The notes: generated by a model from the sequence alone, not told the origin. 64,000 bases of DNA from Octopus bimaculoides (GCF_001194135.2 NC_068983.1:137394429-137458428), one strand, 5' to 3'; shown: positions 16,050-56,664, numbered from the stretch's first letter. Made by a program: numbers and translations.

Positions 16050-16409
16050 ATGCCCCAATGTAAGGCATTCGGTTGTTCAAGTCATGATGGCCGACTCCCT
16101 CGTCATATCAGGCTGCACTGCTTCCCCAAAGATCGGGGAATGTGTCGGATATGGGCCCAGAACATGGGCGTTAGTTCCAGCCAGATAGAGAACTTCCTCG
16201 ACATGGCCTGTTCGGATAACCAGAGCATACGGCGCCGATTTCGAATCTGCACTCTGCATTTTGAACCTCATTGTTTCGAACAGAACTTCCAGTTTATGCA
16301 GAACCCACGTATCTTACTGAAGCCGAGTGCCATACCAACAATATTCCAGACGAACAATGTCCCCACACCAAAATGGTATACCAAACTGAAACTAAACAGC
16401 CAAACTGAC
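16050..16409 (+). CDS. Variable exon V1: complete THAP zinc-finger domain (120 codons, phase-0 donor)
   Basis: MPQCKAFGC..HCFPKD..W..RICTLHFE..LKPSAIPTIF shows the THAP C-x4-C, FP, W, C-x2-HF and AVPTIF-like box. Donor GAC|GTAAGG at 16409/16410; 360 nt from ATG. Confidence 0.85.
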
Positions 16410-17732
16410 GTAAGGAAATCTTTTATTTTTTGTGAACCTTTTAAATATTGCTATTTTCTTTTACACACACACACATTCTTTTTGAATCATTTAAAAGGCA
16501 AACACTATTAACTCTGTTGCATCCCCTCTATACGATGGGTTAGAAACTCATATTGCTGTTGCTAGTAACAATAGTATAATTAAGATAACTACTTTTCAAG
16601 TTAATAATGTCAGTTTTGATGCAAACAATAGCACTTGAAATATATTATCGCAGTAATCAACTTTTAGCCTTTCATCTCTTTTGGGGTCGATAAAATTAGT
16701 GCCATTTACTGGGTCATAAAAGGAACCGCCAAGAATAATAGCAGATATTGTGTTGTTAATTTGTGATAAAGTAGAGGAGTGGGTGACTGAATAAAGGAAC
16801 GGGGAGAAATTGATTGAGAAAGGAAAATAGCTAACATACCAGCATCAGTTACTTTAAATCTCAATTTCGTCTTTCCACATCTAGAGCTTTGGTGGCCTTC
16901 TACCAGAGTTAAACATTATTAAAAGCGTTACACGTGCCATTGTTTCACTACAATTAAGTCCAGGAGAATTTAGAACAACCATTGGAAGCACTAAAGTCTT
17001 TTGTTTACACAACGTTTTTGGTTTAAACGTAAGTCGGGAGGGGTATCTTAAAGTTATGTAATTTGATGATAACCAAGATCTGAAACGACAAATTTTTTTT
17101 TTCTATATTCTATCAACTTAATTGTAATCTACACCCTCGAAAACCTACCTTTTGTAAAAGTTTTATCGAAAGACGCATTTTTTAGAGAGAGACGTTGTAG
17201 TTGGTTGAATTAACTCAGTACATAAGAGCTATGTTTATTTACATTATCATATAGCAGGAAGTCGACCGTCATTTTATAAAGTTTGGAAATTACACATTAT
17301 TAAAGTGTTCATGTTCTTATTTTTACACATAATATTGTTTCATTTTGTTGTGCTCCATTGCTGTTAGCATAACACAAACTTGTTTCGTTGTATTAAATAT
17401 TTTAATTATCTCTTCAATTTCCTTCCATAATTAAGGCTAGTAAAGGTGTAAAACTTATAATAATATAGATATCTAAATAATGATTATAATAGCCATCAAT
17501 TTATGGGATATGCTGCTAATAAAGAACACCATTAATAACTCCCATTTGAAATTATTTTTGTGTAAGTATACAATATATTTAAAAAATATTTTCTTTATTT
17601 TATCATTATTTAAGATTTTATCTGTAGTTGACAATCTATATATTTTCAAAGAATGTTTGAGCTTTACTTGTAACTTTCAAACGCGTGTACTTGTTTTAAT
17701 AGGAGGGACAAGGTGATGAAATTTGATCTTCA

Positions 17733-18012
17733 GTTGTTGAGCCTCATGCAGGCTTATGGCAAGTGACCGAGACTTCTGGCGATTTGCTGTACTTGAGAAG
17801 ATACGTCAAGCTAATTGAATTATGGCCAGTGCCGGTGACATGTAAAAGACACCTAGTACACTCTGTAAAGTAGTTGGTATTAGGAAGGACATCCAGCCGG
17901 AGAAACCAAGCCAAAACAGACAACTGGGGCCTGGTGCAGCTCCATGGTTTACCTGTACCAGTCAAAGCGTCTAACCCATGCTAGCATGGAAAATGGACGT
18001 TAAATGATGATA
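17733..18012 (+). mobile_element. RTE-type LINE 3' end
   Basis: Decayed ORF end (..SDRDFWRFAVLEK..) followed by the tail CCCATGCTAGCATGGAAAATGGACGTTAAATGATGAT, which recurs in the window (about 2190, 12620, 22450, 49090, 62510). Confidence 0.7.
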
Positions 18013-18990
18013 GGAAGCATCATCAATAGATGAGTTTTGCTAAACATATCAAAGCTTGCGAAGCTTAATGTTTGTCTTAGTTATTTTATATTTTAACTCT
18101 CCTTCTCTCATATACGTTCTTCTAGATTTCAACAAATGTCTCTCAGTTTTCCAATTAATGGAACTACCTACTCATTAACTTGTACCATAAATTTAGACTT
18201 GAGGAAAAATCAACATGCACTGTGAGATAGAACTGGAACCTTAAAACAGAAATACAGTCTGTTTGCTGGCCTCCACATGGTTTCCACATTATCCAATTTC
18301 ATTCACAAGGCTTCAGTCAATCTTAGACTGTTACATGATATTTGCCTGCCATGAAGTTGGAACAAACCTAAAACCACATAATTGCAAAGCAAACTTCTTA
18401 GCCACATGTCCAATGTGCTTGATATACAAAGAAATGCACTCGGACTTTGTGCAGATGCATATAGAAATAGGTATCATATAGCATGCATTTCTTTAATATA
18501 ACTGGGAAGAGGGACTAGCTATACAAAGCTTAGAACTTCAAATGGCAAACTTCCTACATATACATCCAGTGTCCAACTTTCTCTTTTATGTGTATGTAAT
18601 TACATGGATCACATTTACCTTTATGAGGATTTTCATATATACATGAGTGGACAAATGAAAGAAAAAGGCATTCGAAATCTGGCTTGTTCAGGCTTCAGGT
18701 AACTAATACTGAATAAGATGGGTTTCTGTTAACAGGCCTACAAAACTTTAATTCACATGGAGCCAAATCAAAGTGTTTTAAATAGTAACACACACACACA
18801 CACACACTCACATATCATATTTATTATACATATGGGAGAAAAGACGCGTGTGTATTAATCAGAGGTATACTAAGCAGCAATGATTGAAATATAGTTGTGT
18901 ATAATTATATTTAACATGTTTATGTACACTCAAAAGTGGAAAGATTTCCACTGCAAAGACTGTCTCTGGAGAGAAATTCTTATAGATTCT

Positions 18991-19174
18991 ATGGATGGGG
19001 GGCACTACTGGGCTAACGAAAATTTCTCCCCAAAAAGATTTTGCAACTGAGGTCTTTCAAATTTTGGGTGTAACACTATATTAAATATATTTGTACACAC
19101 TTGTGTGTGTAGACTTTTGCTGCAAAAACTTTTAGGAGAGAAATTCTTAACCTAGTAGTGCCCTCCCCCAATCC

Positions 19175-19176
<2 letters not shown>
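18991..19176. mobile_element. MITE with degenerate ~55-bp terminal inverted repeats
   Basis: ATGGATGGGGGGCACTACTGGGCTAACGAAAATTTCTCC.. pairs imperfectly with ..GGAGAGAAATTCTTAACCTAGTAGTGCCCTCCCCCAATCCAT. Confidence 0.6.
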
Positions 19177-19221
<45 letters not shown>

Positions 19222-21165
19222 TACGTACATACATAATGGTTGTCCACCCGGAAGAGGATCATAACTATCACTGTGAAGTAGTGTCAGCAATGCCTGTGGA
19301 AGAGTTTTAAGTTGAGTACTGCAGCTTATACAGCACCACGACTCTCACTAGCAATACCAAGAAGCCTAGAGACAAAGTGTAAGATATATGGCTCAGAGCA
19401 GCAGGTTTTATGTACAAGTTAGCCTTCTAGAGAGATGCCTTAACATGGACCAGGAATCCCTCATTCCCAGTGGGCTTACTGCGCCCTCGGACACCAACCA
19501 GCTTATATATATATAGACACACATTATGCACTTGCACTCGTGCATGAGTTTGTGTGAAGAGTGTTTGGCTCACGATCATAAGTTCATAGCTTCAATTCCT
19601 GGACTAGGAAACATCATGTCCTTAAGCAAAGCATATCAGTTCACATTGCTCCAGTTTACTCGGCTAAAAATGAGTGGCAGCCCTCTCTTCCTCCAGTCGT
19701 TTTTCTGTTGGGTTCAAAGGTGAGAAGGCCCTTGGGTGTCTCCGTCAGCTCACATTAGGGTTAGTACCGAGAACAAAAAAAAAAAAAAAAACGCCTGGTA
19801 CAAACTATCAGATCATACTCGCTTGCGAATGACGGCTATTTTTATATGTACATTTGTAGAGATGTACATGAATATATATATATATATACACACGCACATA
19901 CATATATATATATACACACACACACACTTATGTGAACGTAAATTGTTATAGGGATGCTGATATTTATTTTTTTAATCTAATCATTTTCTTAATGAAAAAA
20001 TAAACAGCTTCAAGCCTGTGGCAATAAATAACCTTTTCCCATTTAATGATAGCAGCAGTCACTATCAAATGTTTATATAGCTGTTGTAAATACTCGCTTC
20101 GGTTTTGTGGTAAATAATGACTATGTAGATGTTTACTTGGTAGGAAGGACTATTTCAGTTGGTAGACAACATAGAACTTGCTGCTTTCTACGTCAGCAGT
20201 TTGTGTAGTATACGTTATGTACATTAGGGGTACTACTTATGTTCAGGCCTGTTATCGCGAACGGCTTTCAGTTGCAATCTGATGTCAGCGACCTCGTATT
20301 ATTAATCAACGTAGCTATTCTTGATGCCATTTCTCTTGTTTCGTCCTGTGGTTCTGTTTCTCTGTTTTGGAGTACATCTTGTTGGCCTCTTCTATTTTCT
20401 AAGCCTGCTGTGGAATGTTTCAGCCGATGCACTCATTCTCGTGGCGTATTGTTTCGCTCTCTGCCAACTTCGTTCGTCACCCACTGTGTAATAATAACTT
20501 GTGTTATCGGACTACAGTATATCACACATCTCTGTCTGCCTTATCACTCCAGTTAAAAACTTACACAACTGAACAATCTCTAGTCTACTTACACGTGTTT
20601 ATAATCCTTTCTGTTTTATGTTTATGTTCATTTTATATCTCTTTATTGAGTGTACATAAGATAAATATCTATTGTCTTCTTACGTGATTTAATTGAATGT
20701 CACCAACAACGTACTACTACTGCTACTATTTCGATCGAGAATTATACAGTAGTCTTGTTATCACATGAATAACAACTTTAGATATCTTAGCGCCAGTCAC
20801 TACTTTGCTCAGTTCGATGCTCGTAACAATTTTAATACTGTTATTGACTGCATTTAATCATCTAACGCTGTTGTTGCATTCACAACTCCTTTTAAAATTA
20901 TGCAGATATCAGCTGTTATATAATTTAAACGCCACGTTTCTTTTCCTTGAAAGAGATTGTCTCATTTGCTTTATGTATAAAGTTATGCATTTTAAATTAA
21001 AATATTGAGCTTCGATTCCTGAATCAATCACCCATGTACTTTTGTGTTCAAATGCATCGTAAGGAATAATATACATATGAAGGGATTGAATTTTTTAAAG
21101 TTATATAACTTTAGTGTTACTGTTTTTTTCAATTGTTCAGCATTTTACTTGATTTATATACTATA

Positions 21166-22260
21166 ATGGCAACTCAAGAGTCACAGAATGAGAGTTCCGC
21201 CGCCAATATTGAGGCCCATTCTACAAAGCGTGCCGAAGTCAGTGCCTGCGAGAAATTTGGTGAATATATTTTTTCTAAAGGAGAAAAATTACGACTCCAT
21301 CAGTTGTTGTTGCAAATTGCTCGTGGTGATATGGAAGCCAAGCATCGCTTGAAAAATTATCTTTGTAGTTTTTTCCCTGATTTACGTAAAGATGACGGTA
21401 CTTGGTATAAACACGCCGGTCTACGAGGTATTCGTTATGGCCTTTATCGCTTCATACTTAAGAGGGGCATCGATATATTAAATGACCCTTATTTCCTAGA
21501 GGCTAACAGAGTGTGGCAGAAGCATTCTTATAGTCTACAACAAACATTCTCAGCTGTCGGGAATGCCAAATCCGCAATAACTCTTGCTGATTTACAAAAA
21601 GCCTACAGCTGGTGTAACAGTGATCTGAATAATCCAAACAAGCTCCAGAAACGTGTCTTTATGGACATCGTCTTGTTTTTTGGTCGTAACGGCTATAAAT
21701 GCCTCTCACAATTAACGAAACTTCATTTTCGCGTTAACAAGGATCAGAAGTTTGGTTTGCAATCTATAATCCTCACTGATGGTATTGTCAACACTGGCGA
21801 AAAGACTCCGACCGAATTAAGTAACACGAGTTGTAGGATGATACATGAAGTTCCAAATGAAGCATTGTGTCCTGTTAAAATTTTTGTAAGCTACTTATCA
21901 AGATTGCACCCACAAAGTGATAAGTTCTTTTGTCAACCCCGCTTTGGAGATGTGACAAATTCGCCTACCTGGTACACATTGCAACCACATGGCGGCAAGA
22001 GCATAGCTAACTTTATGAGAGAAATATCATCCAAAGCACACCTCTCACATTCATACACCAACCAATGTCTTCGTGCCACACTCAGCAGTCTCATTGTCTC
22101 AGATAAATTAGATCTGAAGAGCATACAGAAAGTAATCACTTACCAGTTACCTGGGCCAAAGTTGGACAGTGTCTCTTCTGAGAAGCCACCAATTGATGCC
22201 AAGCAGCACCATTTCAAAAGATTGATTTCAGCTGATTCTTCACTTTCATGGATATTTGAG
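21166..22260 (+). CDS. Variable exon V2: Crypton tyrosine-recombinase-derived (DUF3504-like) domain, probably catalytically dead (365 codons, phase-0 donor)
   Basis: Intact ORF with RKDDGTWY, NPNKLQKRVF, CPVKIFVSYLSRLHP, WY..PHGGKSIANFM and YTNQCLRAT motifs of the Crypton/KCTD1/ZMYM/QRICH1-type domain. Acceptor TTTTTTTCAATTGTTCAG| at 21140/21141; donor GAG|GTTAGT at 22260/22261. Confidence 0.85.
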
Positions 22261-22447
22261 GTTAGTCGAATTTTCTCTTTCACATCAATAAAGATTTATG
22301 TTCAGATTAAGGCATACTGGGAGTTTTGAACAGATTTTTAAGCAATGTATATGATTCATTGACTTAAAAAAAAAAAAAATTTTATCATGTTTGCACAACA
22401 GATACTTTTCAAAATCTCTCTCATTACACTGGTACATGTTTTAATTA

Positions 22448-23381
22448 CATCATCATCATCGTTTAACGTCCGCTTTCCATGCTAGCATGGGTTGGACGAT
22501 TTGACTGAGGACTGGTGAAACCGGATGGCAACACCAGGCTCCAGTCTGATTTGGCAGAGTTTCTACAGCTGGATGCCCTTCCTAACGCCAACCACTCAGA
22601 GAGTGTAGTGGGTGCTTTTACGTGTCACCCGCACGAAAACGGCCACGCTCGAAATGGTGTCTTTTATGTGCCNNNNNNNNNNNNNNNNNNNNNNNNNNNN
22701 NNNNNNNNNNNNNNNNNNNNNNNNNNNNNNNNNNNNNNNNNNNNNNNNNNNNNNNNNNNNNNNNNNNNNNNNNNNNNNNNNNNNNNNNNNNNNNNNNNNN
22801 NNNNNNNNNNNNNNNNNNNNNNNNNNNNNNNNNNNNNNNNNNNNNNNNNNNNNNNNNNNNNNNNNNNNNNNNNNNNNNNNNNNNNNNNNNNNNNNNNNNN
22901 NNNNNNNNNNNNNNNNNNNNNNNNNNNNNNNNNNNNNNNNNNNNNNNNNNNNNNNNNNNNNNNNNNNNNNNNNNNNNNNNNNNNNNNNNNNNNNNNNNNN
23001 NNNNNNNNNNNNNNNNNNNNNNNNNNNNNNNNNNNNNNNNNNNNNNNNNNNNNNNNNNNNNNNNNNNNNNCTTACACTCTGACGGGTATTCACATTGACA
23101 TTACACATCCAACGGAGCATACTGGCTTCATTCCTTGCGAGCTTACGTATGTCCTCAGCAGTTACAGCCCATGTTTCACTGCCATGTAGCATGGTTGTTC
23201 GTACGCATGCGTCATACAGTCTGCCTTTTACTCTGAGTGAGAGTCCCTTTGTCGCCAGCAGGGGTAAGAGCTCTCTAAACTTTGCCCAGGCTATTCTTAT
23301 TCTAGCAGCTACACTTTCAGCGCACCCACCCCCACTACTAACTTGGTCGCCCAGATAGCGGAAGCTATCGACTACCTCTAG
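22448..23381 (-). mobile_element. 5'-truncated, young RTE-type LINE (contains an N gap)
   Basis: Minus frame EVVDSFRYLGDQVSSGGGCAESVAARIRIAWAKFRELLPLLATKGLSLRVKGRLYDACVRTTMLHGSETWA.. is typical of the RTE RT C-terminus. (CAT)n tail at 22448; CpGs retained. Confidence 0.9.
22673..23070. other. Assembly gap (N run)
   Basis: Direct reading. Confidence 1.
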
Positions 23382-24516: not shown

Positions 24517-24550
<34 letters not shown>

Positions 24551-26557: not shown

Positions 26558-26758
26558 ATGGTTAAACGGTGTTGTTATGGTACATGTAACACTGACAATA
26601 GATTTCCCGAGAGGTTGGCGGGCGGTGTTCAGTTCATACCTTTTCCGAAGCCCAAACAAAACCTAGAGAAATGTCTACGATGGATTCTGTGCTGTGGTAG
26701 ACCTTCCTATCAATTCAACGTTAATCGCATCAGCAGAGCAACATATATTTGTACCAAG
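26558..26758 (+). CDS. Variable exon V3: N-terminal part of a split THAP domain (67 codons, ends ..YICTK, phase 0)
   Basis: MVKRCCYGTCNTD..FIPFPKPK..CLRW..CGRP..YICTK. Donor AAG|GTATAA at 26758/26759; the final His ligand is missing from this exon. Confidence 0.9.
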
Positions 26759-27540: not shown

Positions 27541-27543
<3 letters not shown>

Positions 27544-30307: not shown

Positions 30308-30658
30308 ATGCCACATTGTATAGCATTTGGTTGCACCAGCCACGACGGTCGATTACCTCGTCATATTCGGTTGCATTGTTTTCCGAAGGACCGAGAAAAA
30401 TGTCGGATCTGGGCCCAGAACGTGGGTATTGACTCTGGCCAGTTGGAGAATTTTCTTGATATGACATGTTCAAACATTGCAAAAATACGGTGCAAGATTC
30501 GAATCTGTACGCGCCATTTCGAAAGTCGGTATTTAGAGATCGGCTACCGCTGCAAATTACCACGAATGAAATTGAAACCTGGTGCAATACCCACTCTTTT
30601 TCATAGTAAAGGATCTTTACCACAAAAACAGACTACTGAGGATGACAAACGGATTACT
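30308..30658 (+). CDS. Variable exon V4: complete THAP domain, paralog of V1 (117 codons, phase-0 donor)
   Basis: MPHCIAFGCTSHDGRLPRHIRLHCFPKDR..RICTRHFE..LKPGAIPTLF. Donor ACT|GTAAGG at 30658/30659. Confidence 0.85.
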
Positions 30659-31867: not shown

Positions 31868-32594
31868 CACGTGTTTGTCTTGTAATCCTGTAGAATGGAG
31901 TAAGATTGCAATTCTCCAGTTTGAGGTGGGAATGTGCCCCCACCCCCAAATTGTTTATATTTCTTACAGCCACTCGCTTTCCTTTTTTTTTTTCTTTTGG
32001 TTAGAGTGTTTTTATTTTGGACTTTTTCGTTTCAGCCCACTCTTAGATTTATATTTTAGAGCTCTGACATGATACTGCAACAAAAAAATCAATATTTTAA
32101 TTTTATTCTTATTAACACCACCTTGCACCTTGGGCAGATTCCATCTGTTGCAAGCATTCAGGCCTTTTCTCTGGTTTAAGGATGCCTTCCTCTTCCCTTT
32201 TCTCTATTCACAGTGGCCCTTTGCAAGGTTATGAGCACTGGCTTTTCTCCTGACTAAAACAATTTAAAAGGGGTATACTTGTAAATGTACATATATATGA
32301 TGGCTATTAAGTACATGTATGTCTGCATGTACATACAAATATATTTGTGCCAGCATGTCTCTGTGACTAAGAAGCTGACTTCCCAATGACATGGTTTCTG
32401 GGTCAGTCACACTGTGCAATACCTTGGGCTATAATTTTCTACCTTTGGGTAAAGGAAAATACAGGAGGATCAGTTAATTATGCGGCGCTGGGTACAGGTG
32501 CCATCACGAATTTCGCTTTCGCGTGCCCCAACAGGTCTTCGCAAGCCTAGTTTAGTGTCCAATGAAGGAGATGACGTTGGCATGGGTGAATGAT

Positions 32595-32632
32595 GATATA
32601 TGTACGTTTGTATATATATATGTATGTATGTA

Positions 32633-32692
<60 letters not shown>

Positions 32693-32952
32693 CATGCATG
32701 TATGNNNNNNNNNNTATATATATGTGTGTGTGTGTGCATGCATGTATGTATGTGTGTATATATATATATATATATATCTGTGTGTGTGTGTGTATATATG
32801 TATGTATATGTATATATATATATGTGTATATGTATATATATCCCATGCTAGCATAGAAAGCAGACGTTAAACAATGATGTATATATATATATAGATATAT
32901 ATATATATATATTATGTATGTATATATATATATTATGTATGTGTATATGTAT
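32595..32952. repeat. Compound (TA)n/(TG)n/(TATG)n microsatellite with a 10-nt gap at 32705-32714
   Basis: Direct reading; accounts for the YI/HT-rich spurious ORFs. Confidence 0.95.
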
Positions 32953-33120
32953 ACTTGTTTCAGTCATTTGACTGCAGCCATGCTGGAGCACTGCCTTTAG
33001 TCGAGCAAATCTTTGGAAGCCCAGTACTTATTCTATCGGTCTCTTTTTGCCGAACCGCTAAGTTACAGGGACGTAAACATACCAGCATCAGTTGTCAAGC
33101 GATTGTGGGGGGGGGGGCAG
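32953..33120 (-). mobile_element. SINE 3' part (same family as 55149)
   Basis: TACTTGTTTCAGTCATTTGACTGCAGCCATGCTGGAGCACTGCCTTTAGTCGAGCAAATC is nearly identical to 55149-55207. Confidence 0.8.
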
Positions 33121-35577: not shown

Positions 35578-36735
35578 ATGGATACTTTTGCTGTTGATGG
35601 GCAACATAAGGTCGTGCCTAAAAATACAAGACGTGCCAATGAAAAAGCGGCCCGTGCTTTACGGGATTATTTAAAAGATAACAGTTTATCCACAGATTTC
35701 GAATCTTTGGACGCCAAAGAGCTGAGTGAGCTGCTGGTATTATTTTACCGAGATGTACGAAAGCGTGATGGTGATCAATATAAGGTGACCAGCTTGGAAG
35801 GCTTCCGATATGCACTTAACCGATACTTTCGGCTTCCACCGTATCTTAAAACATTTGATCTCATTAAAGATGAGATATTTGAAGAAGCTAATGCTCATTT
35901 TAAAGAAACTGTTAATGAGCTGAAAACTAGTGGTAAAGGTGAAGTAACCCATCACCCTATTATTTTGGATGAAGATTTAGAAAAGTTATATTCATCCGTT
36001 TATTTTGACATCAATACACCGTTAGGCTTACTGAATAAAGTACAATTTGAGATCCGGTTATATTTCTTCCGAAAAGGTCCCCAGAGTATGGTAGAAATGA
36101 CTAAGAAGACGTTCGAAGTCCGCGTTGATTCGCAGACCGGGTATAAGTATATGTGTAAAGCTGAAGAACAGTCCCCACGCAGTTTGAAGACCAAGACCGT
36201 ATCGGTGTGTTCTGCTTCTAACATCCAAGCAACAGGTCCGTCTGCAATTGACATTGAAGAATTAACATATATCGTTGAAAGGCCCAATGATCCAAACTGT
36301 CCTGTGAAATCATTTGAAAAATATAAGAGCAAGCTCCATCCGCTTTGCCACCGATTATGGCAAAGACCGATATCTCCTTATTCGCCCGAAGGCTCAGTCT
36401 GGTATCGAAACATTGCTGTAGGTCGAAATACTTTACAAAGGTTTATGCCTGAACTTAGTCTTGCCTGTTCACTCTCACAAAAGTACAGCAACCATTCCAT
36501 TAGAATAACTGGTTCCAACAAGACCGTTTTATCTGGGGGTTACAATTTTACTTTGCCGTATGCTAAAGATTCTCGCCTCGAGCGTAAAACCTTAGAAGGT
36601 GAATCAAATCATTCTTCAAACTCTGGTGCAACGCTTTTAGCTAGCTCAACGAATGCTCGGGTTATTGATAATTCTGGTGATGGTTCTCTGGACCTGCAGG
36701 TAACATTGATACGCAATGGCACTGAGAAGGACCAG
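35578..36735 (+). CDS. Variable exon V5: second Crypton tyrosine-recombinase-derived (DUF3504-like) domain (386 codons, phase-0 donor)
   Basis: Intact ORF with VPKNT, FYRDVRKRDGDQYKVTSL, TPLGLLNKVQF, CPVKSFEKYKSKLHP, WQRP, WY..VGRNTL and YSNHSIR. Acceptor ACAG|T-ATG. Donor CAG|GTAGGT at 36735/36736; alternative CAG|GTAACA at 36699/36700, also phase 0. Confidence 0.85.
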
Positions 36736-38659: not shown

Positions 38660-38772
38660 CATTTCAACCAATCAAATTCTTCGACTTATCATCACACCCC
38701 TCTTGTTCTGTCATGTCAGCCATTTTAGTCAGTCAAGCCTTTTCTGTTGCCTAGTCGGTTAAGAATAGTGTA
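38660..38772 (+). promoter_or_regulatory. Putative promoter/leader of V6
   Basis: CCAAT at 38668-38672, YY1-like CAGCCATTTT at 38717-38726, possible acceptor CTAG| at 38754/38755. Confidence 0.4.
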
Positions 38773-38979
38773 ATGGTGAAGCGTTGTGCATGGGGTTTGT
38801 GTAATACAGACGACCGTTATCCTGAACGTCTGTTCGGTGGTGTTAAATTCATACCATTTCCGAAACCGCGGAGACAACGAGACAAATGTCTTCGTTGGAT
38901 TGAACGTTGCGGTCGAATTCCCGAGCAACTGAACGTTAACATTGTTGACGGAAACAAAAACCTTTACGTCTGTTCAAAG
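38773..38979 (+). CDS. Variable exon V6: N-terminal part of a split THAP domain (69 codons, ends ..YVCSK, phase 0)
   Basis: MVKRCAWGLCNTDDRYPERLFGGVKFIPFPKP..CLRWIERCGR..YVCSK. Donor AAG|GTAAAT at 38979/38980. Confidence 0.9.
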
Positions 38980-40259
38980 GTAAATAACTCTGGCTTCTAA
39001 TTTCAGCCTCTCTTTGTAATCGTAACAACTTTAAAATCTGGATTTTCTACTTATGAATTAATTTAATTTTACTCATTAATATTCTTTATAATGTAAATTA
39101 AATATAAACGGATAAAGTTTTTATATTTAAATTTTCACTTGTGATTATAGAATAAAATTACTTGTTGAGCTTATCCTGTAAAGTTTATGCTATTGCTTGC
39201 TGAATGTTTAGGAAAAAAATACAGAAAATTATTGCTTGTTTTGTTTAAATTAGTTATACTATTTGAGGGCCACTGATTTGTGCCAAATTGAAAAAGTATT
39301 TTTAAAACCCATTTCATTTTTCAGTACTTATTTTATTTTCACTTTTCCATCATATATTAGTTCTTCCTACATTTTTGTTGCTTCATCTTTCATGTCTCTC
39401 TACAGAAAAAAAAAATCTACCTAAAAGTAAAGTCCGCTAAAAATATTGAGCACAGCGATACCTGATACTACTTGCTGAAACGTACCATCGTTGAAAAAAA
39501 AAATTACCTTAATATTTATGGTATTTAAATGTGACGTTTCCAAACAAAATTGTATCTATTTCTATAGTTAGATAAGTATCGACTAAATGTCTTTAATTGT
39601 ATCTAATGTGCATTAATCTTTGTATGGTAAATGCTGGCGTGAGAAGAGTGAAGCTGATGATATGATACAAAAATGTTTTGCCTTCTGTCATGTTCGAATG
39701 TCTTGCTGTGTGCGTGGTATGTAAAAGGGGTTGTATGGAAATAATGGTGAAAACTTGAGTTATACAAGGTAATATGCATTTACGGATGAAAACCAAAACT
39801 TGGTTCGACTGTTAATTAGTAAACTATATATTATATTATATTTATAAATGTTATTGCTATGAGGATCAAGAAGAAATTCGATTTAGGTTCTTTTTAAAAT
39901 AGGTGCCAGTTAAACTGTTATCTTAGTACTGATGTTAGAAATCATGTAAACCTAGGATGAAATACATTGCAGTATTTAAGTCATTTAACTATTTAAGTAC
40001 CATTGATGTACTGGGACCAATTTGTTTTAATGCCAAAAATTCCTATTTTAACATTTGAACCATCTAATCTCGAAGTTCATATATACTACCATTTGCATCC
40101 CAACTGTTTCCGGTGTTATCGTGTTTATATATCACATGACCACGGTACAAACAGTATTTCCGCTTTTGCCAGGAGTAAAGCATATCAGTTTTACTAGCAA
40201 ATATATAATTTTCCCTTCCTTCTTACGATTTTTTAAACATCTTTTCAGGAGTTCCAAAA

Positions 40260-40466
40260 ATGGTAACTAAGCGTTGCGCTTGGGGTACTTGTCGTAGTGA
40301 CAGTCGGTACAAACATAAACCTCACATGCTGAACGTGTTTTTTGTATCTTTTCCTAAGCCTAAGAGTTCTCTGGAGCGTTGTATACGTTGGCTTGATGCA
40401 TGTTGCAGGCCTTACTATCAGCTGAATATTAATAAAATTAAATCGCATCACTTCGTCTGCTCGAAG
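40260..40466 (+). CDS. Variable exon V7: N-terminal part of a split THAP domain (69 codons, ends ..FVCSK, phase 0)
   Basis: MVTKRCAWGTCRSDSRY..FPKPK..CIRWLDACCRP..FVCSK. Acceptor CTTTTCAG| at 40248/40249; donor AAG|GTAAGC at 40466/40467. Confidence 0.9.
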
Positions 40467-42099: not shown

Positions 42100-42380
42100 T
42101 ATCATTGTGGATTCCGAAAGTCGTCCTTATCTGACAGTTGATTTCATTACTTACATCCTTTCTTTTCTCGTTGGTTATTGTGCTCATGCGCTTCTGTTCA
42201 ACTAATAAAACCATGAAATGGTTGGCAGCTCCATCCAGAAGTCTTGCGTTTAAATTAGATAGCTGTAGTGACGATGGTATTTAGTAGCATTAGTTATGTA
42301 TGTTGTAGTGTCGGTTGTGCTCTCCCCTTGCCTCTAACTCTTGTTACTGAGCTCTCTCCCCTCCCTGCAGTCAGCTCGCC

Positions 42381-42578
42381 ATGGTGCGCCGATGTGTGTG
42401 GGGTTTGTGTAACGCCGACGAAAGGTACCCAGAACGAATAAACGGTGGATTTTTCATTCCTTTTCCTAAACCGCGTACAAAGCTAGAAAAGTGTTTGCGT
42501 TGGATTGAAGCATGCGGTCGGCCGTATTCTCAACTAAATGTATTCAAGATCGATCAGAATAAATATGTCTGTTCAAAG
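42381..42578 (+). CDS. Variable exon V8: N-terminal part of a split THAP domain (66 codons, ends ..YVCSK, phase 0)
   Basis: MVRRCVWGLCNADERYPER..FIPFPKPR..CLRWIEACGRP..YVCSK. Kozak GCTCGCCATGG; pyrimidine-rich acceptor CTCCCTGCAG| at 42370/42371; donor AAG|GTAAGG at 42578/42579. Confidence 0.9.
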
Positions 42579-43427
42579 GTAAGGATTGATAAAGCTAACT
42601 GACTTGTTTTCCGTTGTTTTCATTTCATCTCATGTCATTTCCTTTCTCAGCTATTTATGAATTTGCATCCCGTAAGTGATACTTTTTTCATTCCGCATGA
42701 TATAATTTAAAATCTAGTTTGATACTATAGAATGAAATACCGAAAAGATTTCCTTACAAAACATGCCTTATTAAAACAAATTTGTGTGTGTGTGTGACTG
42801 AGTCGAACGCGTAATGTTTTCTCACTTATCCTCTTCTTATAATTGGTTATTTACACGCCGAAAACCTTTTCACTCTATCTGTGGATATGAAATATTCTTG
42901 CGCAGTAGTCATTGTTTCTCTCTTTATACAGCATCTACATACGCACACAAAGGAGAAAAAAGACAGGAAGAGTAGCGGAATGATTTGTAACACACTTACG
43001 CTGAAAGCCATTGTAGCAGTTGGGAGGAGTGGGGGGTAATCGGCACGGTCATATAAGCATCTTAGTTGCTGCTATTGACACGACGTGAATGAATATACAC
43101 ATATGTGATAGATTTTTCACCGCTATTTTTTTTTACATATTATTGTAGTTGAATTATTTTGACTAATCTACGGTAGTATGCTGTTGCTAACTGGAAAGCT
43201 TATTTCTATAGCTGGTTGTCCCTAAATCTCAGACAAAAATAGTCCATAAATAGTCCCTATTTCTGACTGCGATATAGTTATATACGAAATCTTATTCTAT
43301 TGGGGGTTTTTTTTGTTTTCTTTCTTTTTCAAGTTAGCTACTGTTTGCTTTATTTCGATTTGTTTATGAAAGTAAATAGTTTTCGTTGAAGTGTGCCATC
43401 TATTCCCCCTCCTCCCCAAACAGACTC

Positions 43428-43432
<5 letters not shown>

Positions 43433-43500
<68 letters not shown>

Positions 43501-43508
43501 TATATATA
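43433..43508. repeat. (TG)n(TA)n microsatellite
   Basis: Direct reading. Confidence 0.9.
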
Positions 43509-45189
43509 TCGACTCTCAAAATGGCTACCGTGCCTCAACTGCATCACGAATAAGAACAAAAAGCAAATTAAACAGTTGATCTCCCTACTCAAATCTTTAA
43601 GTCCATTAAATGGTTTGTTGCTAGGGGTTCCCCCCTCGTCCCGGTTTTAATTAGGCAACCACGTACAGGCGTTTATCGTTTTCAGTAATTTAGATGTTGA
43701 GTGGAATACATAAACGATGAGTATTAGTACTGCTATATTATGATGCTATATAGAGACCGAATTGGATTTCTCTAGAAACTGATAAATTACTTGGCCTTCT
43801 CCTTAAACTATGTTTATTATTTGTTTGTTTACATCCGCATTGATACGCATGAGTTATTATCCCCAACATCGTTTTAGAAAGTACAGTTGGAATGTTATAC
43901 ATATTTTCGATGTGTGTGTGTGTGTATACACACATCTTGAAAAGGCACGAGGATTATTAGCTAGCTTTTATCTTATTGACCCAAGGCAGGATTTGAACTT
44001 GGAGCAAGGAGGTTGTAAACACTGAAAAGCTGGCGTGAAATTGGAATGTGGCGTGCATATCTTTCCCATGAGTTGTGGGCAACTAGGACTGAAAATCGTA
44101 ACTGACATTTAACATGCTCAAATATTTTTCTTATGTGATCGTAGCATCGATGTCTTGCAAATTTATTTTTAGGAAAGGGGTATCAGAAAATGTTGACATT
44201 CATGTCGCATTCTCAAGGGCATTCACCCTAGAAACTTTCTATGTCTGTTTGGAATTTAGTTGCAATGTTGATTACAAATCTAACACTTGTAACTCTACAT
44301 TATGTTTCTGGATTTGTAGCACCCTCTCTCTACTTTAACCAACTACAGCTACATTTTTTAAATTCTATTTCCCAAATTCTGTCTTTAACTTCAGAACCTT
44401 GAACTAGTAGGCATTTCTTGGTACCCTGATACTTAGTGGATATGCATACGGCAGTCTCATAGTTCCTAAAACATTGGGATACAAGGACAGGAAACCGTTT
44501 ACATTCAAGACTGGCTGATCAAATCCACGAACCAATGAGGGTGCCTTATGTCAGTCACTTCGTTAGATATACGGGCCAATTCTCCCTCAAGTAATACCAC
44601 CATCATCGTTTTAAAATGATAAATTTTCTCGATCATAGCCTAAACAATTACTGATAAATTTACATTCCAAAATAATACAAATGGTAGGTTTCTTGAGGTT
44701 TTTGTTAGTGTTAAAGAACTTAGTGGTTTTGATGACAATAACCGGTTGATAACATTCATTGTTTAAAGAATTTAAAGCAAAATTGTTAAAGCGTTGAAAG
44801 AAATGCCTTGCAGTATTTCTCCTGCTCTTTATGTTGGAAATTCAAATTTCACTTATGTCAAATTTGCCTTTCATTTTTCTGGGATCAATAGTATCAACTC
44901 AACCCCTCCTCGAAATTGCTAGTCTAAATCAAAAGAATTAAACAAAAATATGTAATTTAAGTGCACAAGGTATAGAGTTAAAATAGTCATTAAGGATATG
45001 AAGACAGGTCCATCAGAAATAGTTGTTGAGATGCTAAAAATATCTCAAATAGGACTTGCATAGTCAACCTAATAACACAGAGAGTTGTTGTACACAGTGG
45101 TTAGCATGACAGTATAATTGTCAAATGTTACACGGGCAAAGGAAATACTTTTAGAAAGAAGCAGTTAGAAGCATATCAGACTGTATGGA

Positions 45190-45920
45190 CCAAGATATGG
45201 AAGAAGTTTGGTGTCTTCATGGCGATGAGATTATGAGAAATGGTCTTCATCTGTTCTCTGAGTGCATAGAGTAAAACAGTTAAAGGAGTCATTGCCTTTA
45301 CTGGCAACAAAGAGATTCTCTTCAAGCAAAAAGTTGACTGGAGAGAATGTGAAAGCCTGAAATGAAATAAGCATCCCACATTGGAGGTGTAATATTAGTG
45401 TACATGAGAGCAATGTGGTAGAAAGAGAGAATCTGGATATAAGAATCAGGTGTAGTGTCCAAGAGAGACAACTGCATTGGTACAGACATGTATGGGTAGG
45501 TTGATTAGATGTACCCAGCAACTCAACGGGAGAAAGCTGTTGATAAAATAACACAAGTGGAGAGGGACTAGTTCACCTATGTATGCATTAAAAAAGCAGA
45601 TGTAAAAATAAAACTGTTTAATATTGTCTAAATATAACATGCAGCTATCATGTACTACTGCATGAACACTCAGAACACAACTAATTAATGTCTACATTTG
45701 TGTAATAGTTATGACTCCTATGTACTCTACTCTTTATTACTTACCCAACCCTGCTGTTTTAAATTGATACAGAGGCAAAAGAGATGTTCTAGAAAGATAA
45801 AACTACAGAAGTATTGAGCTTTTGGACCTGGTTGTTAAAGTTATAGAAAGGGCTATTGCAAAACTGATTTAGAAGAGGATTAGGCTAGTTGAGGTGTAGT
45901 TCAACTTTGTCAGGAGGAGG
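45190..45920 (+). mobile_element. Two decayed RTE-LINE RT fragments
   Basis: 45190-45560 has GAGTCATTGCCTTTACTGGCAACAAAGAGATTCTC, matching the RTE at 22448. About 45800-45920 reads NYRSIELLDLVVKVIERAIAKLI, like RTE NYRGIKLLD..KV.ERVI. Confidence 0.6.
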
Positions 45921-45975
45921 TACTTCTGCTTCTATTACTTCACTAGCACTATCTCTCCAATTTCACCCAATATGG

Positions 45976-46117
45976 NNNNNNNNNNNNNNNNNNNNNNNNN
46001 NNNNNNNNNNNNNNNNNNNNNNNNNNNNNNNNNNNNNNNNNNNNNNNNNNNNNNNNNNNNNNNNNNNNNNNNNNNNNNNNNNNNNNNNNNNNNNNNNNNN
46101 NNNNNNNNNNNNNNNNN
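45976..46117. other. Assembly gap flanked by a duplicated 319-bp segment
   Basis: 45657-45975 reads the same as 46118-46436. Confidence 0.95.
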
Positions 46118-46960
46118 ACTGCATGAACACTCAGAACACAACTAATTAATGTCTACATTTGTGTAATAGTTATGACTCCTATGTACTCTACTCTTTATTA
46201 CTTACCCAACCCTGCTGTTTTAAATTGATACAGAGGCAAAAGAGATGTTCTAGAAAGATAAAACTACAGAAGTATTGAGCTTTTGGACCTGGTTGTTAAA
46301 GTTATAGAAAGGGCTATTGCAAAACTGATTTAGAAGAGGATTAGGCTAGTTGAGGTGTAGTTCAACTTTGTCAGGAGGAGGTACTTCTGCTTCTATTACT
46401 TCACTAGCACTATCTCTCCAATTTCACCCAATATGGTAAGCAAACAAACAAGACCTCATAGGGTTGAGTGAACCCTTGTTATTGCCTTGCAGACACACAA
46501 ACCTCTCTAGTATTAGTGCCACCAAAAAATACACTCTGTAAATTAATTCTCTTACATTATTTACCTCCCTAATGACTATTATCTTACATCTGTAGATTGT
46601 TGTTACATGTAGTGAGAGATACTATACACCATGTCACTTTGTGTTGTAACAAGTGACAGAACAGTTGGTGTTAAAACACTACCCCAACATGTAGGTTTCT
46701 ATGTACACACACATATATATATCTGAGGTGCAGTCAATCTAGATGGATCAGGAAAATGCATCTTGCTCATATTTAACAAGAAAAATTACTAATAGACATG
46801 TCATGGTGTGGCAGATGCAGTAATAGTAAACTTTGCAGAACATATACATGCATAACCACGTCTGTGAGGCTAGGAAGTTCACTTCACATATGTGACTTTG
46901 TGTCCAGTTTTTCCTTAAATCTATTATGTATAATAAATATTAAAGTATACATGTGTGTGT

Positions 46961-48401
46961 TTAACTCTTTAGCATTTAAACCAGCCATATCCAACCCGAA
47001 TATTCTACCTGTTTTACGTTCAAACCAGCTAGATCTGGTTTCACACACCTACTCTACAATATCAATCTAAATACAGGGTGCGAGATGTATTTGAGGACAG
47101 TTGGTATACAATAAAACAACTATATTTCAGCATAAATAAATATGTATTTGAATAAACATTTGTGCAATTAGTCTTGATAATGATTTTTTATGCAAATTAT
47201 TCTATGAAACCACTTTCGACTTCAATGATTGCTTCAGTGCGGGATCGAAACTGCTAGCATGCTGATATTATATGGTTCTTACTCATTTCGGACATTACCT
47301 GGACAATGGCAGCCTATGAAGCTATGGTATTATGGGGATGATAATTAGTATCCTTTCAGCAGTGCTCCACGTGTAGTCCATAGGGTTCAAATCTGGCAGG
47401 TTTGGAGGCCACATATTGGGTGTCACATAATTGTAAAGATTGTCTGACAATCATTTTTGGGTGACTAGGACTTTGTGAGAAGGTGCTGAGTCTTGCATAC
47501 TTCATCAATCCAGAACTTGATAAGTTTCCAGTACCTCAATGTATCCAGCAGCATTAATTCTAAGACCCTGTGGAAAAAAAAGTGGGGAGGCATCTCATGA
47601 TCTTCACTGCTCACCACTCCTAAAACCAACACAGTTGCTGGAAATTTTGTGTGCATTACTCTGGGTACTTTAGAAGGATCTGCACATAACCACCTGTCAT
47701 TTCTTCTGTTAGACTTGATCCTGGTCAAAGTTTTTTTTCTTCATCAGAAAATTCATGAGGGTTTTTCACTTTGTTAAGAAACCATTTTGAACAGATGAGA
47801 CAGTTTTCTTGTGTCTTCGCAGACACAAATTGGCCTTTCCTCATTGCATAGGACTTGTATTGATTGTCACTATGTACCATAGTTCTTATAGTCTACTCTG
47901 ACACCTCTAATTCTTAAGCAATGGACCTCATTGATCTTCTGGGATTTTCATTGATAATATTTTGAACATGTATAAATTCCAGTGTCCTTTTAGTGTCTGA
48001 GCATTGTGAATGTTTTTTTTCTCTTTGATACAGGTGAAACAATACCATCGCATGCCTTCAATTCCAACCTAACTTTGTGTACAAATGATCTTGCAACACT
48101 TGCTAGAAAGTTGCTGATTTCTAAATCATTGTGGTTTGCATATATAGCAACTATGACTGCATGTCTTTTCATTTCTTGAGTTAGCATATCTTGAAAGGGT
48201 TATCTGGGGAAAAAAATTATACATTAAATAATTTGAAGGTGTAATGAGCTAAAAATGAAATGTCCTCAAACAACCCTAGCACCCTGTATATGCAATTATA
48301 TCTTCAAAATCTCAAAACTATGAGATAATTCATGATTGATACAAAGAAATGTAAATAAATACGCATTACATTTGACAATAATTTGGACACTAAAGGGTTA
48401 A
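46961..48401. mobile_element. piggyBac-like MITE interrupted by a mariner element
   Basis: TTAA-CTCTTTAGCAT left end and CACTAAAGGG-TTAA right end. The two halves match the intact copy at 11065-11275. Confidence 0.7.
47074..48286 (-). mobile_element. Degraded Tc1/mariner-superfamily (maT-like) transposon, ~1.2 kb
   Basis: TA-CAGGGTGCGAGATGTATTTGAGGACA left end and TGTCCTCAAACAACCCTAGCACCCTG-TA right end. Minus-strand remnants include HTKFPATVLVLGVVSSE and WPPNLPDLNPMDY, with stops and frameshifts. Confidence 0.85.
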
Positions 48402-50214: not shown

Positions 50215-50365
50215 ATTAACAGCCTTCTATCAGTTTCTCTGCCAGATCCACTCATAAGACACAGGACGACACGAAGCTGTAATAGAAGACACTTGCCCAA
50301 AGCACCATGCAGTGGGACTGAACCCCTAAATTATCTGGTTGGGAAGCAAACTTCTTAATCACATA
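50215..50365 (-). mobile_element. tRNA-derived SINE head
   Basis: AGAAGACACTTGCCCAA..GCAGTGGGACTGAACCC is shared with 55430-55480. Confidence 0.65.
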
Positions 50366-51109: not shown

Positions 51110-51803
51110 TTTGTAGCGTAGTTTAAATACAAAAATAAATTTACACATGAAAAATATCCAGCTTTTCGTTTGCATGTGCCATTGTGTTATTTTGACTGAA
51201 AAATTAACCCGAGTTCCGTAGCATAGTGTAAATACAGAAATAAATTTACACAAGCAAAAAACGCACTCAGCCTTTCGTTTGCAAGTGCCATTGTGTTATT
51301 TCGACCGCTTGTAACTGCTGATCAAAGATAGCGTACGGGTCGACTGTTTGCTACGTTATCTCTCATCACATTATTTGATTGTATGGTTGCGTTGAGTAAA
51401 TATCTCTGGGGGTTTTCTGCAAAATGACGTACTCAATAGCAGAAAGGATGGAGATTGTGAGAACGGGTTCTGTTAAGCAAACGTGTTAAATTTTTTGAAG
51501 TTAAGTTTCCGGGTAAAGGCTTACCGGCAAAGAGAACGATACAAATGTTGGTTAAGAAGTGGCGCACCACGGGGTCAGTACACAATGCCCCAAAACCAAG
51601 AGACCCTACTGTTCGAACGCCAGAAGTTATTCAGGACGTTCGCCAAAGGATTACTCGAAGTCCAAACAAGTCGACACGTAAATTGGGCGCAGCAGTCTCA
51701 CATAAGCAGGAGGACATCCCAGCGGGTGTTGAAAAGTCTAAAGTTGGATCCAACTGATTTCACATGTGTATAGCAATTAAAAGTGGATGACAAGAACAAA
51801 CGA
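51110..51803 (+). pseudogene. Mariner-like transposase 5' fragment (DUF4817-like HTH) with upstream ~110-bp tandem duplication
   Basis: From ATG 51424: MTYSIAERMEIV..KKWRTTGSV..VRTPEVIQDVRQRITRSPNKSTRKL/AQQSHISRRTSQRVLKSLKL..KNKR. Stops at 51487 and 51771 plus two frameshifts. Duplicated block ..CTTTTCGTTTGCATGTGCCATTGTGTTATTT at about 51115-51200 and 51220-51305. Confidence 0.7.
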
Positions 51804-52299: not shown

Positions 52300-52330
52300 G
52301 TGATTTACAAAATGGCCGACTGTTTCAGAG
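52300..52330 (+). promoter_or_regulatory. YY1-like element in a CpG-rich region upstream of V9
   Basis: CAAAATGGCC at 52308-52317, inside a CpG-retaining stretch (about 50900-53250). Confidence 0.35.
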
Positions 52331-52818: not shown

Positions 52819-52995
52819 ATGGTTCAGTCGTATGTCCGGAAAACAGACAATGGGAAGTGGTCATCTAGCCAGATGGTTTCTGCCGTATCAGCAGTACTGT
52901 CTGGAAGTCTCAGTATTAGAAAAGCTGCTAAGAAGTTCGCAATCCCTAAAGCCACACTCGCTCGTCATTATAAAAAACCGTGTTATTCCTTCTTA
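52819..52995 (+). CDS. Variable exon V9: pipsqueak-type HTH (pogo-like transposase N-terminus; 59 codons, phase-0 donor)
   Basis: MVQSYVRKTDNGKWSSSQMVSAVSAV..LSIRKAAKKFAIPKATLARH fits HTH_psq. Donor TTA|GTAAGT at 52995/52996; no DDE domain follows. Confidence 0.75.
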
Positions 52996-55148: not shown

Positions 55149-55515
55149 TACTTGTTTCAGTCATTTGACTGCAGCCATGCTGGACCACCGCCTTTAGTCG
55201 AGCAAATCAACCCCAGGACTTATTCTTTGTAAGCCTGGTACTTATTGTATTGGTCTCTTTTTACCGAACCACTAAGTTACGGGGACGTAAACACACCAGC
55301 ATTGGTTGTCGAGCGATGGTGGGGGGACAATCACACATACATACATATATAATATATATATATAATGTGACGGGCTTCTTTCAGTTTCCATCTACCAAAT
55401 CCGCTCACAAGCTTTGGTCGGCCCGAAGCTATAGTAGAAGACACTTGCCCAAGGTGCCACGCAGTGGGACTGAACCCAGAACCATGTGGTTGGTAAACAA
55501 GCCACTTACCACACA
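55149..55515 (-). mobile_element. Near-full-length tRNA-derived SINE
   Basis: Reverse complement begins with the tRNA-like head ..GTGGTAAGTGGCTTG..GGGTTCAGTCCCACTGCGTGGCACCTTGGGCAAGTGTCTTCTACTATAGC. Confidence 0.85.
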
Positions 55516-56568
55516 CACAATATCTGTAAGCATTTCTTTGTAGCTGGGCTGTTTGGGTGAGAGATGTCATTATGCACTCTTAAAATAAATTAACAGAAAT
55601 TACAAAAATAAAAGGCATATAACTTACATGTTATAAATTATGCCTTCTGTATTGACAATAAATGTAGATTGCTTGGAGTATATGTTAATGTGTGTGGTAG
55701 CCATAGAACAATGAATGTGGAAAAGTTCTGATAGGGTTTGGGGGAATAATATTCTACTTCCATGAAAAGCAGAAGTGCCAATGAACTGAAAGTGAAGTAG
55801 GGCATTTAAAGAGCTGAAATATATGTAAGGGTGGTGATGTGAACAATAGATGCTGGATGAAAATGTGTTGTTTGTTAGATACTTACTTACCACAGTAAAA
55901 TGCAGTAAGAAATATGGTGCAGTTTCAAATAACACCATGTCAATAAATCTTAAAAGAGTAGGGCAATAAGTGATGGTATATAGAATCTAATGCTAATATC
56001 AACAAAAGGGCATTGTAATAATAATCCTTATTTAATTTTATTACTGTATTACTTTCACTATTTGCTTGTCTTAACTAATTAATTACCAACAGCACTAATT
56101 TATATCTGAGTGTGCTGTACACCAGGAATTAACTGCTAGTGGCACCAGTTCAGTTTTGAAATAGTAAACTTGCATTTGGAAATTTCAAAAGTTAGGGGGG
56201 GGGGTTCTGCAAAGTGACAGCCACAAATGACCTCCAGCGAAACTGATAATCAAATAACTTTATAGTTCCACAGATATTCTTTTAATTTGAAGGCAACATT
56301 GGACGTTGATTTTTCCATGATGAAATTTTAACATGAAGTTTCAGGTAATGGAAGTAGTCAACTCACAGACACATACACAAAACTTAGTTTGCAAGTAATA
56401 TGGCACAAATACCCTACATCTAGTAGTGGGTCGGTGTATATGTCAATTGACTACTTACTATTTCCATGATGCTTCATTCTAAAATTTCTTAATATATTCT
56501 GATAAATTTTTGAAACCTAACGTATTACCTTATGTTCTAATACCAAATCTTATTTTCTTCCACTCCAG

Positions 56569-56664
56569 CATTTTGTTGGTGGCAATGGACCTACACGAGA
56601 CCACCCTGATCCTCTACCTGTCAGACCAATGAATGTTCTCCATTCCTCAGCTGGTTACATAGAT
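56569..56664 (+). CDS. Shared (constant) exon C1: HFVGGNGPTRDHPDPLPVRPMNVLHSSAGYID; completes the split THAP finger
   Basis: Strong acceptor TCTTATTTTCTTCCACTCCAG| with branch-like TTCTAAT and consensus donor GAT|GTAAGT. 96 nt, phase 0-0, open frame starting His-Phe. Confidence 0.9.

Follow-up and report, generated by a model that had tools for sequence, protein, structure and literature searches.

A RefSeq-annotated octopus gene joining alternative transposon-derived 5' exons to a shared BTB-domain tail

We analyzed a stretch of 64,000 nucleotides (nt) of the Octopus bimaculoides genome (GCF_001194135.2 NC_068983.1:137394429-137458428; hereafter the window), which covers about a third, probably the middle one, of the 195-kb range of the + strand gene LOC106877732. 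Nine open reading frames (ORFs) of the window each run from an ATG to a GT donor, and all nine belong to this gene together with an exon at 56569. The nine heads are referred to as V1 to V9 in their order along the window and the exon at 56569 as C1. It is very probable that this one gene places alternative transposon-derived 5' heads on a shared tail and so makes a large family of nuclear factors with a BTB domain. Each head exon would contribute its own ATG, one transposon-derived domain, and a phase-0 donor that is spliced to the C1 acceptor at 56569 and, beyond it, to the constant exons. The exons, their domains, and the exact junctions are present in RefSeq models of two octopus species.

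Nine head exons and their junctions to a shared tail

The heads and C1 are collinear on the same strand, as listed below. V1 to V9 are alternative 5' coding exons, and the hyphen in each donor marks the exon boundary.

V1, 16050..16409, + strand: full THAP zinc finger, C2CH plus AIPTIF; phase-0 donor GAC-GTAAGG, in the top 2%
V2, 21166..22260, + strand: DUF3504 (Crypton tyrosine-recombinase-derived) head; donor GAG-GTTAGT
V3, 26558..26758, + strand: first half of a THAP, ending ...YICTK; donor AAG-GTATAA, the weakest of the nine
V4, 30308..30658, + strand: full THAP; donor ACT-GTAAGG
V5, 35578..36735, + strand: DUF3504/QRICH1-like head, HxxR kept; donor CAG-GTAGGT
V6, 38773..38979, + strand: first half of a THAP, ending ...YVCSK; donor AAG-GTAAAT
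V7, 40260..40466, + strand: first half of a THAP; donor AAG-GTAAGC, in the top 0.1%
V8, 42381..42578, + strand: first half of a THAP; donor AAG-GTAAGG
V9, 52819..52995, + strand: HTH_psq (pogo-type) head; donor TTA-GTAAGT
C1, 56569..56664, + strand: 96 nt, 32 codons, phase 0-0 exon HFVGGNGPTRDHPDPLPVRPMNVLHSSAGYID; shared acceptor and linker

The ATG-to-GT lengths of V1 to V9 (360, 1095, 201, 351, 1158, 207, 207, 198, and 177 nt) and their positions agree exactly with the original prediction, which was made from the sequence without database searches. All of these lengths are multiples of 3 because in-frame GTN codons had been picked, and this regularity is therefore no evidence by itself. When the donors were scored with a generic donor matrix and ranked against all 3765 GT sites of the window, seven of the nine were in the top 4% and six in the top 2.2%. 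The C1 acceptor ranked in the top 0.3%, and an in-frame stop was present 1-20 codons 5' of every head ATG.

Pfam and tblastn analyses gave two full THAP, two DUF3504, four half-THAP, and one HTH_psq head, as had been predicted. V1 and V4 alone matched the THAP profile with E values of 4.2e-14 (53.5 bits) and 1.8e-14 (54.7 bits), respectively, and V4 was 62% identical to V1 in amino acids (aa). V9 matched HTH_psq (PF05225) with 43.6 bits against a cut-off of 20.4. For DUF3504 (PF12012), V2 scored 35.5 bits and V5 29.2 bits, marginally under the cut-off of 29.7; V5 also gave a weak QRICH1 match and was 29% identical in aa to V2 and 44% to a DUF3504+BTB protein (P0126). In V2, a Q is found where the His of the R-H-R-Y tetrad is expected (YTNQCLRAT), V5 retains HxxR (NHSIRIT), and the catalytic Tyr was not identified in either head by inspection by eye, without structural alignment. 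The DUF3504 domain is a tyrosine recombinase domesticated from Crypton elements, and DNA binding has not been established for it (PMC3212892); the claim, made for all nine heads, that each is a DNA-binding domain was therefore too strong for V2 and V5.

Among the half-THAP heads, V6 and V8 covered only positions 1-56 of the 87 of the THAP profile. V3 was found by tblastn to be a paralog of V6, V7, and V8 (44-60% aa identity), and the aa identity of V3 and V7 to V6 and V8 was 41-68%, which places them in one family. Across all head paralogs, protein identity ranged from 29% to 68% and every copy was intact. At the DNA level the paralogs aligned in their exons and never in the flanks; they are therefore old duplicates, all of which have been kept intact. 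When four full THAP-DDE_Tnp_4 transposases and a Tigger-like protein were used as tblastn queries, the catalytic part of the transposase was absent from the window. The matches were confined to transposase residues 1 to about 96, which correspond to the V exons plus C1, and this bears out the earlier statement that no catalytic transposase domain is present. In addition, no repeat of 80 bp or longer brackets any head in a self-blastn of the window, in which short inverted repeats were not searched.

For the junctions, V+C1+tail was assembled for each head and compared with RefSeq proteins. Eight of the nine heads gave a full-length, residue-for-residue match, as follows.

V2: X2, XP_014782191 (P0154), exact full-length match
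V4: X16, XP_014782205 (P0150), exact full-length match
V5: X1, XP_014782190 (P0159), exact full-length match
V6: X29, XP_014782219 (P0145), exact full-length match
V7: X30, XP_014782220 (P0141), exact full-length match
V8: X32, XP_014782222 (P0142), exact full-length match
V3: X31, XP_014782221, by exact look-up
V9: X33, XP_014782223, by exact look-up
V1: residues 31-120 + C1 + tail equal X13, XP_014782202 (P0149), whose annotated coding sequence begins at Met31

The predicted use of the phase-0 exon at 56569 as the acceptor is thus found in RefSeq proteins for all nine junctions, and these proteins matched the exons of the window at 100%. In Octopus sinensis, LOC115209932 X1 and X2 carry the same V5-C1 and V2-C1 junctions, and their heads are identical to V5 at 374 of 386 residues and to V2 at 353 of 365 (97%). 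V9 is identical in Octopus vulgaris at 59 of 59 aa.

The constant tail has 534 aa, is encoded beyond the window, and was identical in all 26 LOC106877732 isoforms that were inspected. It comprises a linker of low complexity, a BTB dimerisation domain of canonical type (PF00651, 42 bits, residues about 192-295), and a long disordered C terminus. The nearest solved structures to this BTB are the BTB domains of IVNS1ABP and of BCL6/ZBTB, and direct reading of the tail sequence (...RIFVVADHQRCVMSNLASLWKSGKLCDAG...) showed no FxLRWN (TTK) motif. When the sequence that follows C1 was used as a query, cluster listings gave at least 36 isoforms of the gene, which has about 25 or more heads in total, the nine of the window being a subset. 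At least 16 further head types occur in the isoform set, including FLYWCH, CENP-B_N/HTH_Tc5, BrkDBD-like (Brinker-like), and HTH_29-like types, and three DUF3504 heads stand alongside about 20 others. The heads join the tail in three tiers.

Tier A: heads not present in the window, joined through one or two small mid exons to C1 (THAP, FLYWCH, CENP-B_N+HTH_Tc5, Brinker-like HTH)
Tier B: the nine heads of the window, joined to C1 directly
Tier C: heads spliced straight to the first constant exon, AGPSNQVF..., bypassing C1 (the third DUF3504, CENP-B_N+Tc5, THAP, HTH_29-like, and one without a Pfam match)

C1 was 100% identical in every inspected isoform that carries it, and it is only semi-constant, being bypassed by the Tier C heads. 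Neither the mid exons LKTQNQINEEYDV and GDTQNVQISKQTHRFST, which precede C1 in X4-X11 and others, nor the first constant exon was found in the window, and both therefore lie outside it. The prediction of one locus with interchangeable heads and a common tail is accordingly supported by the RefSeq isoforms, except that the true constant part is the BTB tail outside the window and not the exon at 56569. Splicing of one variable exon to another, which had been named as a finding that would speak against this design, does occur elsewhere in the gene, in X4 and X7, where a THAP exon is spliced head-to-head to a psq exon, but both isoforms still end in the shared exons. Two others, X35 and X36, have no head.

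V6 could be compared with a genomic ortholog from another cephalopod (L001). The two were 93% identical in aa and 79% in nt, 38 of the 44 differences were at third codon positions, and nonsynonymous divergence (dN) was 0.048 with synonymous divergence (dS) saturated. The alignable part runs from the ATG to 11 nt beyond the donor. As judged from this codon-level comparison, V6 is under purifying selection. The V6 ortholog occurs on eight Logan contigs of 1.45 kb. A reading of these as transcripts was rejected, since they are homopolymer-bounded and continue through the donor, as genomic DNA does.

Exon C1 and the origin of the half-THAP heads

The four half-THAP exons finish with ...C-S/T-K, and C1 opens with His-Phe, completing the C-X2-H of the THAP domain. 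When V3, V6, V7, and V8 were joined to C1, each reached 30-32 bits for THAP (PF05485), above the cut-off of 23.9 (31.2 bits for V3+C1), and without C1 they were below the cut-off or gave no match. No second C1-like exon follows any half-THAP head, and C1 is the sole second-half-THAP exon detected in the window by tblastn. C1 is predicted to supply the His that completes the C2CH zinc module of these four heads and to serve the remaining heads as a linker only.

Homologs of the joined half-THAP+C1 sequence were found in bivalves, gastropods, fish, hemichordates, amphioxus, and Lingula. The longer homologs are THAP+HTH_Tnp_4+DDE_Tnp_4 (PIF/Harbinger-like) transposases of about 500 aa, of which the half-THAP family forms the N terminus and C1 corresponds to residues about 66-96. 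The intron position between CSK and HF is also present in a two-exon THAP gene of Pinctada. On the evidence of this homology, C1 would be a fossil, namely exon 2 of the ancestral THAP-DDE_Tnp_4 transposase gene. In Pinctada imbricata, a Mutator-type transposase gene (PF20700, 429 aa; L009 2560-5913) lies 4 kb upstream of the two-exon THAP gene on the same strand. In the octopus assembly (GCA_001194135.2), LOC106877732 contains a nested HTH_Tnp_4+DDE_Tnp_4 fragment of 177 aa near its 5' end, 5.8 kb into the gene.

The history that we consider most likely has four steps. A THAP-DDE_Tnp_4 transposon would first have inserted upstream of a BTB gene, after which its exon 1 and the start of its exon 2 (C1) would have been spliced onto the BTB exons. 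Tandem duplication of exon 1 would then have produced V3, V6, V7, and V8. Finally, full THAP, Crypton DUF3504, and pogo psq exons would have gained donors that use the C1 acceptor.

Head choice, alternative explanations, and surrounding sequence

Several observations weigh against the proposal that one gene makes this family through alternative 5' heads. The RefSeq head-tail proteins are Gnomon models, and the entries of O. vulgaris and Argonauta are not independent, their annotation having apparently been transferred. A spliced transcript contig of this exact locus was not found in the collection when isoforms P0083, P0087, and P0145 were queried against the contig index. The donors of V3 and V9 are middling, at 0.845 and 0.916 in the generic matrix. 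X13 omits the stretch 16050-16139 of the window, with the first two zinc-binding Cys of the V1 THAP, and no exact copy of a protein starting from the ATG at 16050 is present in the sequence collection. The ORF from this ATG is intact, and the X13 model is probably 5'-incomplete; alternatively, V1 is not used as a full THAP. Lastly, strong acceptor-like sites precede the ATG of V8 by 10 nt (in the top 0.1% of AG sites), that of V7 by 11 nt, and that of V2 by 25 nt (42356-42380, 40234-40259, and 21126-21165, respectively), and these three heads may not be true first exons. To our knowledge, Gnomon (NCBI) lists alternative isoforms only when they have transcript-alignment support. Gene models of LOC106877732 have been public since at least the 2015-era XP accessions.

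How a head is chosen bears on these acceptor-like sites. We infer that the choice is made mainly by alternative promoters. A possible but doubtful alternative gives the same proteins from heads that are mutually exclusive internal exons behind one or more non-coding leaders, so that splicing, or a small number of shared promoters, would make the choice. Such an arrangement would account for the sites at V8, V7, and V2, and it is in line with a short leader exon, MKNVINEDDFLLNKNK, that precedes several isoforms elsewhere in the gene, with the joining of two heads in X4 and X7, and with the headless X35 and X36. It also agrees with the upstream comparison, in which no Pcdh-like promoter element shared by all heads was found and the V6-type motif was present at V6 and at none of the other eight. 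Against it, no acceptor-like site was found in the 80 nt 5' of the ATG in V1, V3, V4, V5, or V9. Moreover, none of the acceptor-to-ATG distances of V2, V7, and V8 is a multiple of 3, so that an upstream phase-0 coding donor would shift the frame and only a non-coding leader fits. The sites at V8, V7, and V2 suggest such leader exons.

V6 differs from the arrangement just described in having a conserved CCAAT-box element upstream and an apparent upstream AG that is not conserved in the ortholog. The element is as follows.

38666..38738, + strand: promoter-like element 5' of V6, with a CCAATC box, about 40 nt, and then GTCATG..CCATTTTAGTCAGTCAAGC / GTCATG..CCATTTTAGT

It is kept in the V6 ortholog of the other cephalopod (L001) though the flanks are otherwise unalignable, and its CCAATC-GTCATG portion is also found 5' of the Pinctada homolog. 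This conservation points to a promoter role for the element, and V6 looks like an ancestral first exon with its own promoter. Some of the other heads may lie behind non-coding leader exons.

A reading of the nine ORFs as independent transposon-derived genes, or as decaying fragments in a long intron, is highly improbable; it would make the RefSeq head-tail isoforms prediction artefacts. The head ORFs do run 1-42 codons beyond the donor before a stop and could stand alone, but the half-THAP ORFs lack the zinc-binding His unless they are joined to the single C1, and the conservation of V6 ends at its donor. Decayed transposon pieces do occur within introns, yet the head paralogs are all intact at their low identities, with unalignable flanks. 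Some heads were annotated as independent genes in earlier JGI/UniProt models (P0086 and P0155); against this, the same junctions come from two separate RefSeq annotations, and ORFs combining a head with BTB occur on short contigs in other cephalopods.

At Drosophila mod(mdg4), the clue to trans-splicing is the presence of exons on the opposite strand. That the octopus heads are likewise joined to the tail by trans-splicing of separate RNAs, as at Drosophila mod(mdg4) and lola, is hardly credible: the gene is very long and the protein logic of a constant BTB with many alternative DNA-binding parts is analogous (PMC11426971), but the heads and C1 are collinear on the same strand, ordinary cis-splicing suffices, and opposite-strand exons were not seen here.

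Three runs of N are present in the window, none of which interrupts an exon.

Gap 1, 22673..23070, no strand: intronic, between the V2 donor and V3; could hide a small exon
Gap 2, 32705..32714, no strand: 10 N, intronic, between V4 and V5, inside a microsatellite
Gap 3, 45976-46117 (region 45657..46436), no strand: 142 N, intronic, between V8 and V9

The reading frame from each head to C1 is set by the splice phases and not by gap length. Gap 3 is flanked by direct copies of 319 bp that are 100% identical (45657-45975 and 46118-46436). Perfect duplicates are the signature of an unmerged contig overlap, so that gap 3 and one of the copies may be artefacts; gap 3 is probably such an unmerged overlap, an assembly artefact.

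The window also contains four short interspersed repeat families of about 90-215 bp, in both orientations and with 70-97% identity, which are SINE-like (resembling short interspersed nuclear elements) and unclassified.

Repeat family: 2149-2238, 12610-12716, 17829-18011, 22448-22634, 62498-62643
Repeat family: 6419-6612, 11077-11276, 60593-60806
Repeat family: 32952-33112, 55149-55326
Repeat family: 50224-50357, 55375-55508, 62983-63115

Decayed ORF fragments resembling Tc1/mariner transposases and reverse transcriptases of long interspersed nuclear elements were found at 47465-48187 (-), 51483-51773 (+), 58256-58690 (+), and 23071-23192 (-), and Pfam matches to the intronic transposon remnants were weak only (HTH_32, E 0.003; RVT_1, E 0.058). 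TA/CA-type microsatellites, translated as YIYIYI or HTHTHT, are abundant (32470-32870, 8812-9047, 43350-43592, 61855-61989, and others).

Relation to known systems and significance

In layout, the octopus gene is of the type of the protocadherin (Pcdh) clusters and UGT1A, with tandem 5' coding exons on one strand that have their own ATG and donor and share downstream exons, as far as the octopus protein models show. In protein logic, it is a reversed form of the lola/mod(mdg4) type. It departs from both in defining features. The variable exons of Pcdh and UGT1A are paralogs of one fold, whereas the octopus heads have unrelated folds. Each variable exon has a promoter in those systems, with a conserved shared element in Pcdh; no shared upstream element was found in the octopus gene. 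Also unlike in Pcdh and UGT1A, some octopus heads have acceptor-like sites, and the nested tiers join at three different downstream exons.

At lola and mod(mdg4), one locus combines a constant BTB part with 20-30 or more alternative parts, most of which are DNA-binding modules (PMC11426971). The octopus gene likewise has a constant BTB and many alternative parts, FLYWCH is among the parts in both, and BTB oligomerisation can combine isoforms. The two designs differ in orientation: the fly BTB is N-terminal with variable exons that are 3'-terminal, whereas the octopus heads are 5' with an ATG and the BTB lies in the constant 3' part. In contrast to the fly loci, the octopus BTB lacks the FxLRWN TTK motif, a motif that has not been found in Mollusca (PMC11426971), the heads derive from at least five unrelated folds, and nothing at the locus requires the trans-splicing that the fly loci use.

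Precedents also exist for the capture itself. Isoform b of KCTD1, an alternative transcript, owes its N-terminal DUF3504, ahead of a C-terminal BTB, to a single-exon Crypton DUF3504 that inserted 5' of a BTB gene (PMC3212892). The arrangement of V2, V5, and X3 is alike, and KCTD1 is a single-head, single-step precedent; KIAA1958, with two alternative DUF3504 exons, is a further comparator. In KCTD1 a single head was captured and the BTB is of the T1 (KCTD) type, whereas the octopus gene has many heads and a different BTB, and there is no sign of orthology. Host-transposase fusions through transposase capture by alternative splicing are documented in vertebrates (Cosby et al., bioRxiv 10.1101/2020.05.07.082677). 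As in those fusions, the transposon's own splice sites join DNA-binding domains to host exons, with the octopus half-THAP heads and C1 as exons 1 and 2 and the intron between them kept. The vertebrate cases are single captures in tetrapods, unlike the serial capture and duplication at one locus, all at the 5' side and in a mollusc, that the octopus gene displays.

All matches to the tail at E <= 1e-5 that carried an organism name were from cephalopods. The counterpart gene of Argonauta hians has a range of 153 kb, and in a cuttlefish ortholog and Logan contigs of other cephalopods (1.8-4.6 kb) a head and BTB stand in a single uninterrupted ORF. One of these Logan contigs (L016), with an HTH+BTB ORF (P0118), finishes at its 3' end in the Illumina adapter AGATCGGAAGAGC..., and the last few residues of P0118 are therefore artefactual. 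There are several paralogous octopus BTB genes, and some of these also carry alternative heads, as do LOC106872008 (X1-X3) and LOC115209617 (X1-X3). The neighbor gene 9.7 kb downstream of LOC106877732 on the same strand is a CENP-B_N/HTH_Tc5+BTB paralog. Further BTB paralogs are LOC106877737, -741, -743, -744, and -745, plus -738 in an older record, their nearness being judged by LOC numbers alone.

Octopus THAP and CENPB proteins have been noted to carry BTB, which was treated as a transposon component; isoforms went unmentioned and the single locus was not recognized (PMC10027918). A published description of the locus or its design was not found in a full-text literature search, whose coverage left out most subscription journals. 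The original statement that no description was known holds for this literature, although the isoforms were in RefSeq and BTB on these proteins had been noted. The locus is already annotated in RefSeq but apparently undescribed.

We infer that the heads give different DNA or chromatin targeting, and homo- or hetero-dimerisation through BTB would combine them. More broadly, we lean slightly towards the view that cephalopod BTB loci, of which LOC106877732 is the largest, serially capture and duplicate transposase DNA-binding exons as alternative 5' heads, having evolved independently of insects and as a mirror image of lola and mod(mdg4). One gene would provide ~30 different sequence-targeting factors that BTB dimerisation can combine, and part of the octopus THAP/CENPB/psq "expansion" would be isoforms of a few loci. 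The gene counts of octopus transcription factors that are drawn from protein lists should be read with caution. The locus preserves steps of transposase capture, in which an exon pair and its intron are kept, an exon is duplicated, and the acceptor is reused by unrelated domains. It offers a natural experiment in transcription-factor diversity, with flies and the octopus having reached the same solution from opposite ends of the gene. For cephalopod neurobiology, it is a candidate Pcdh-like source of cell-specific diversity, testable in single-cell data.

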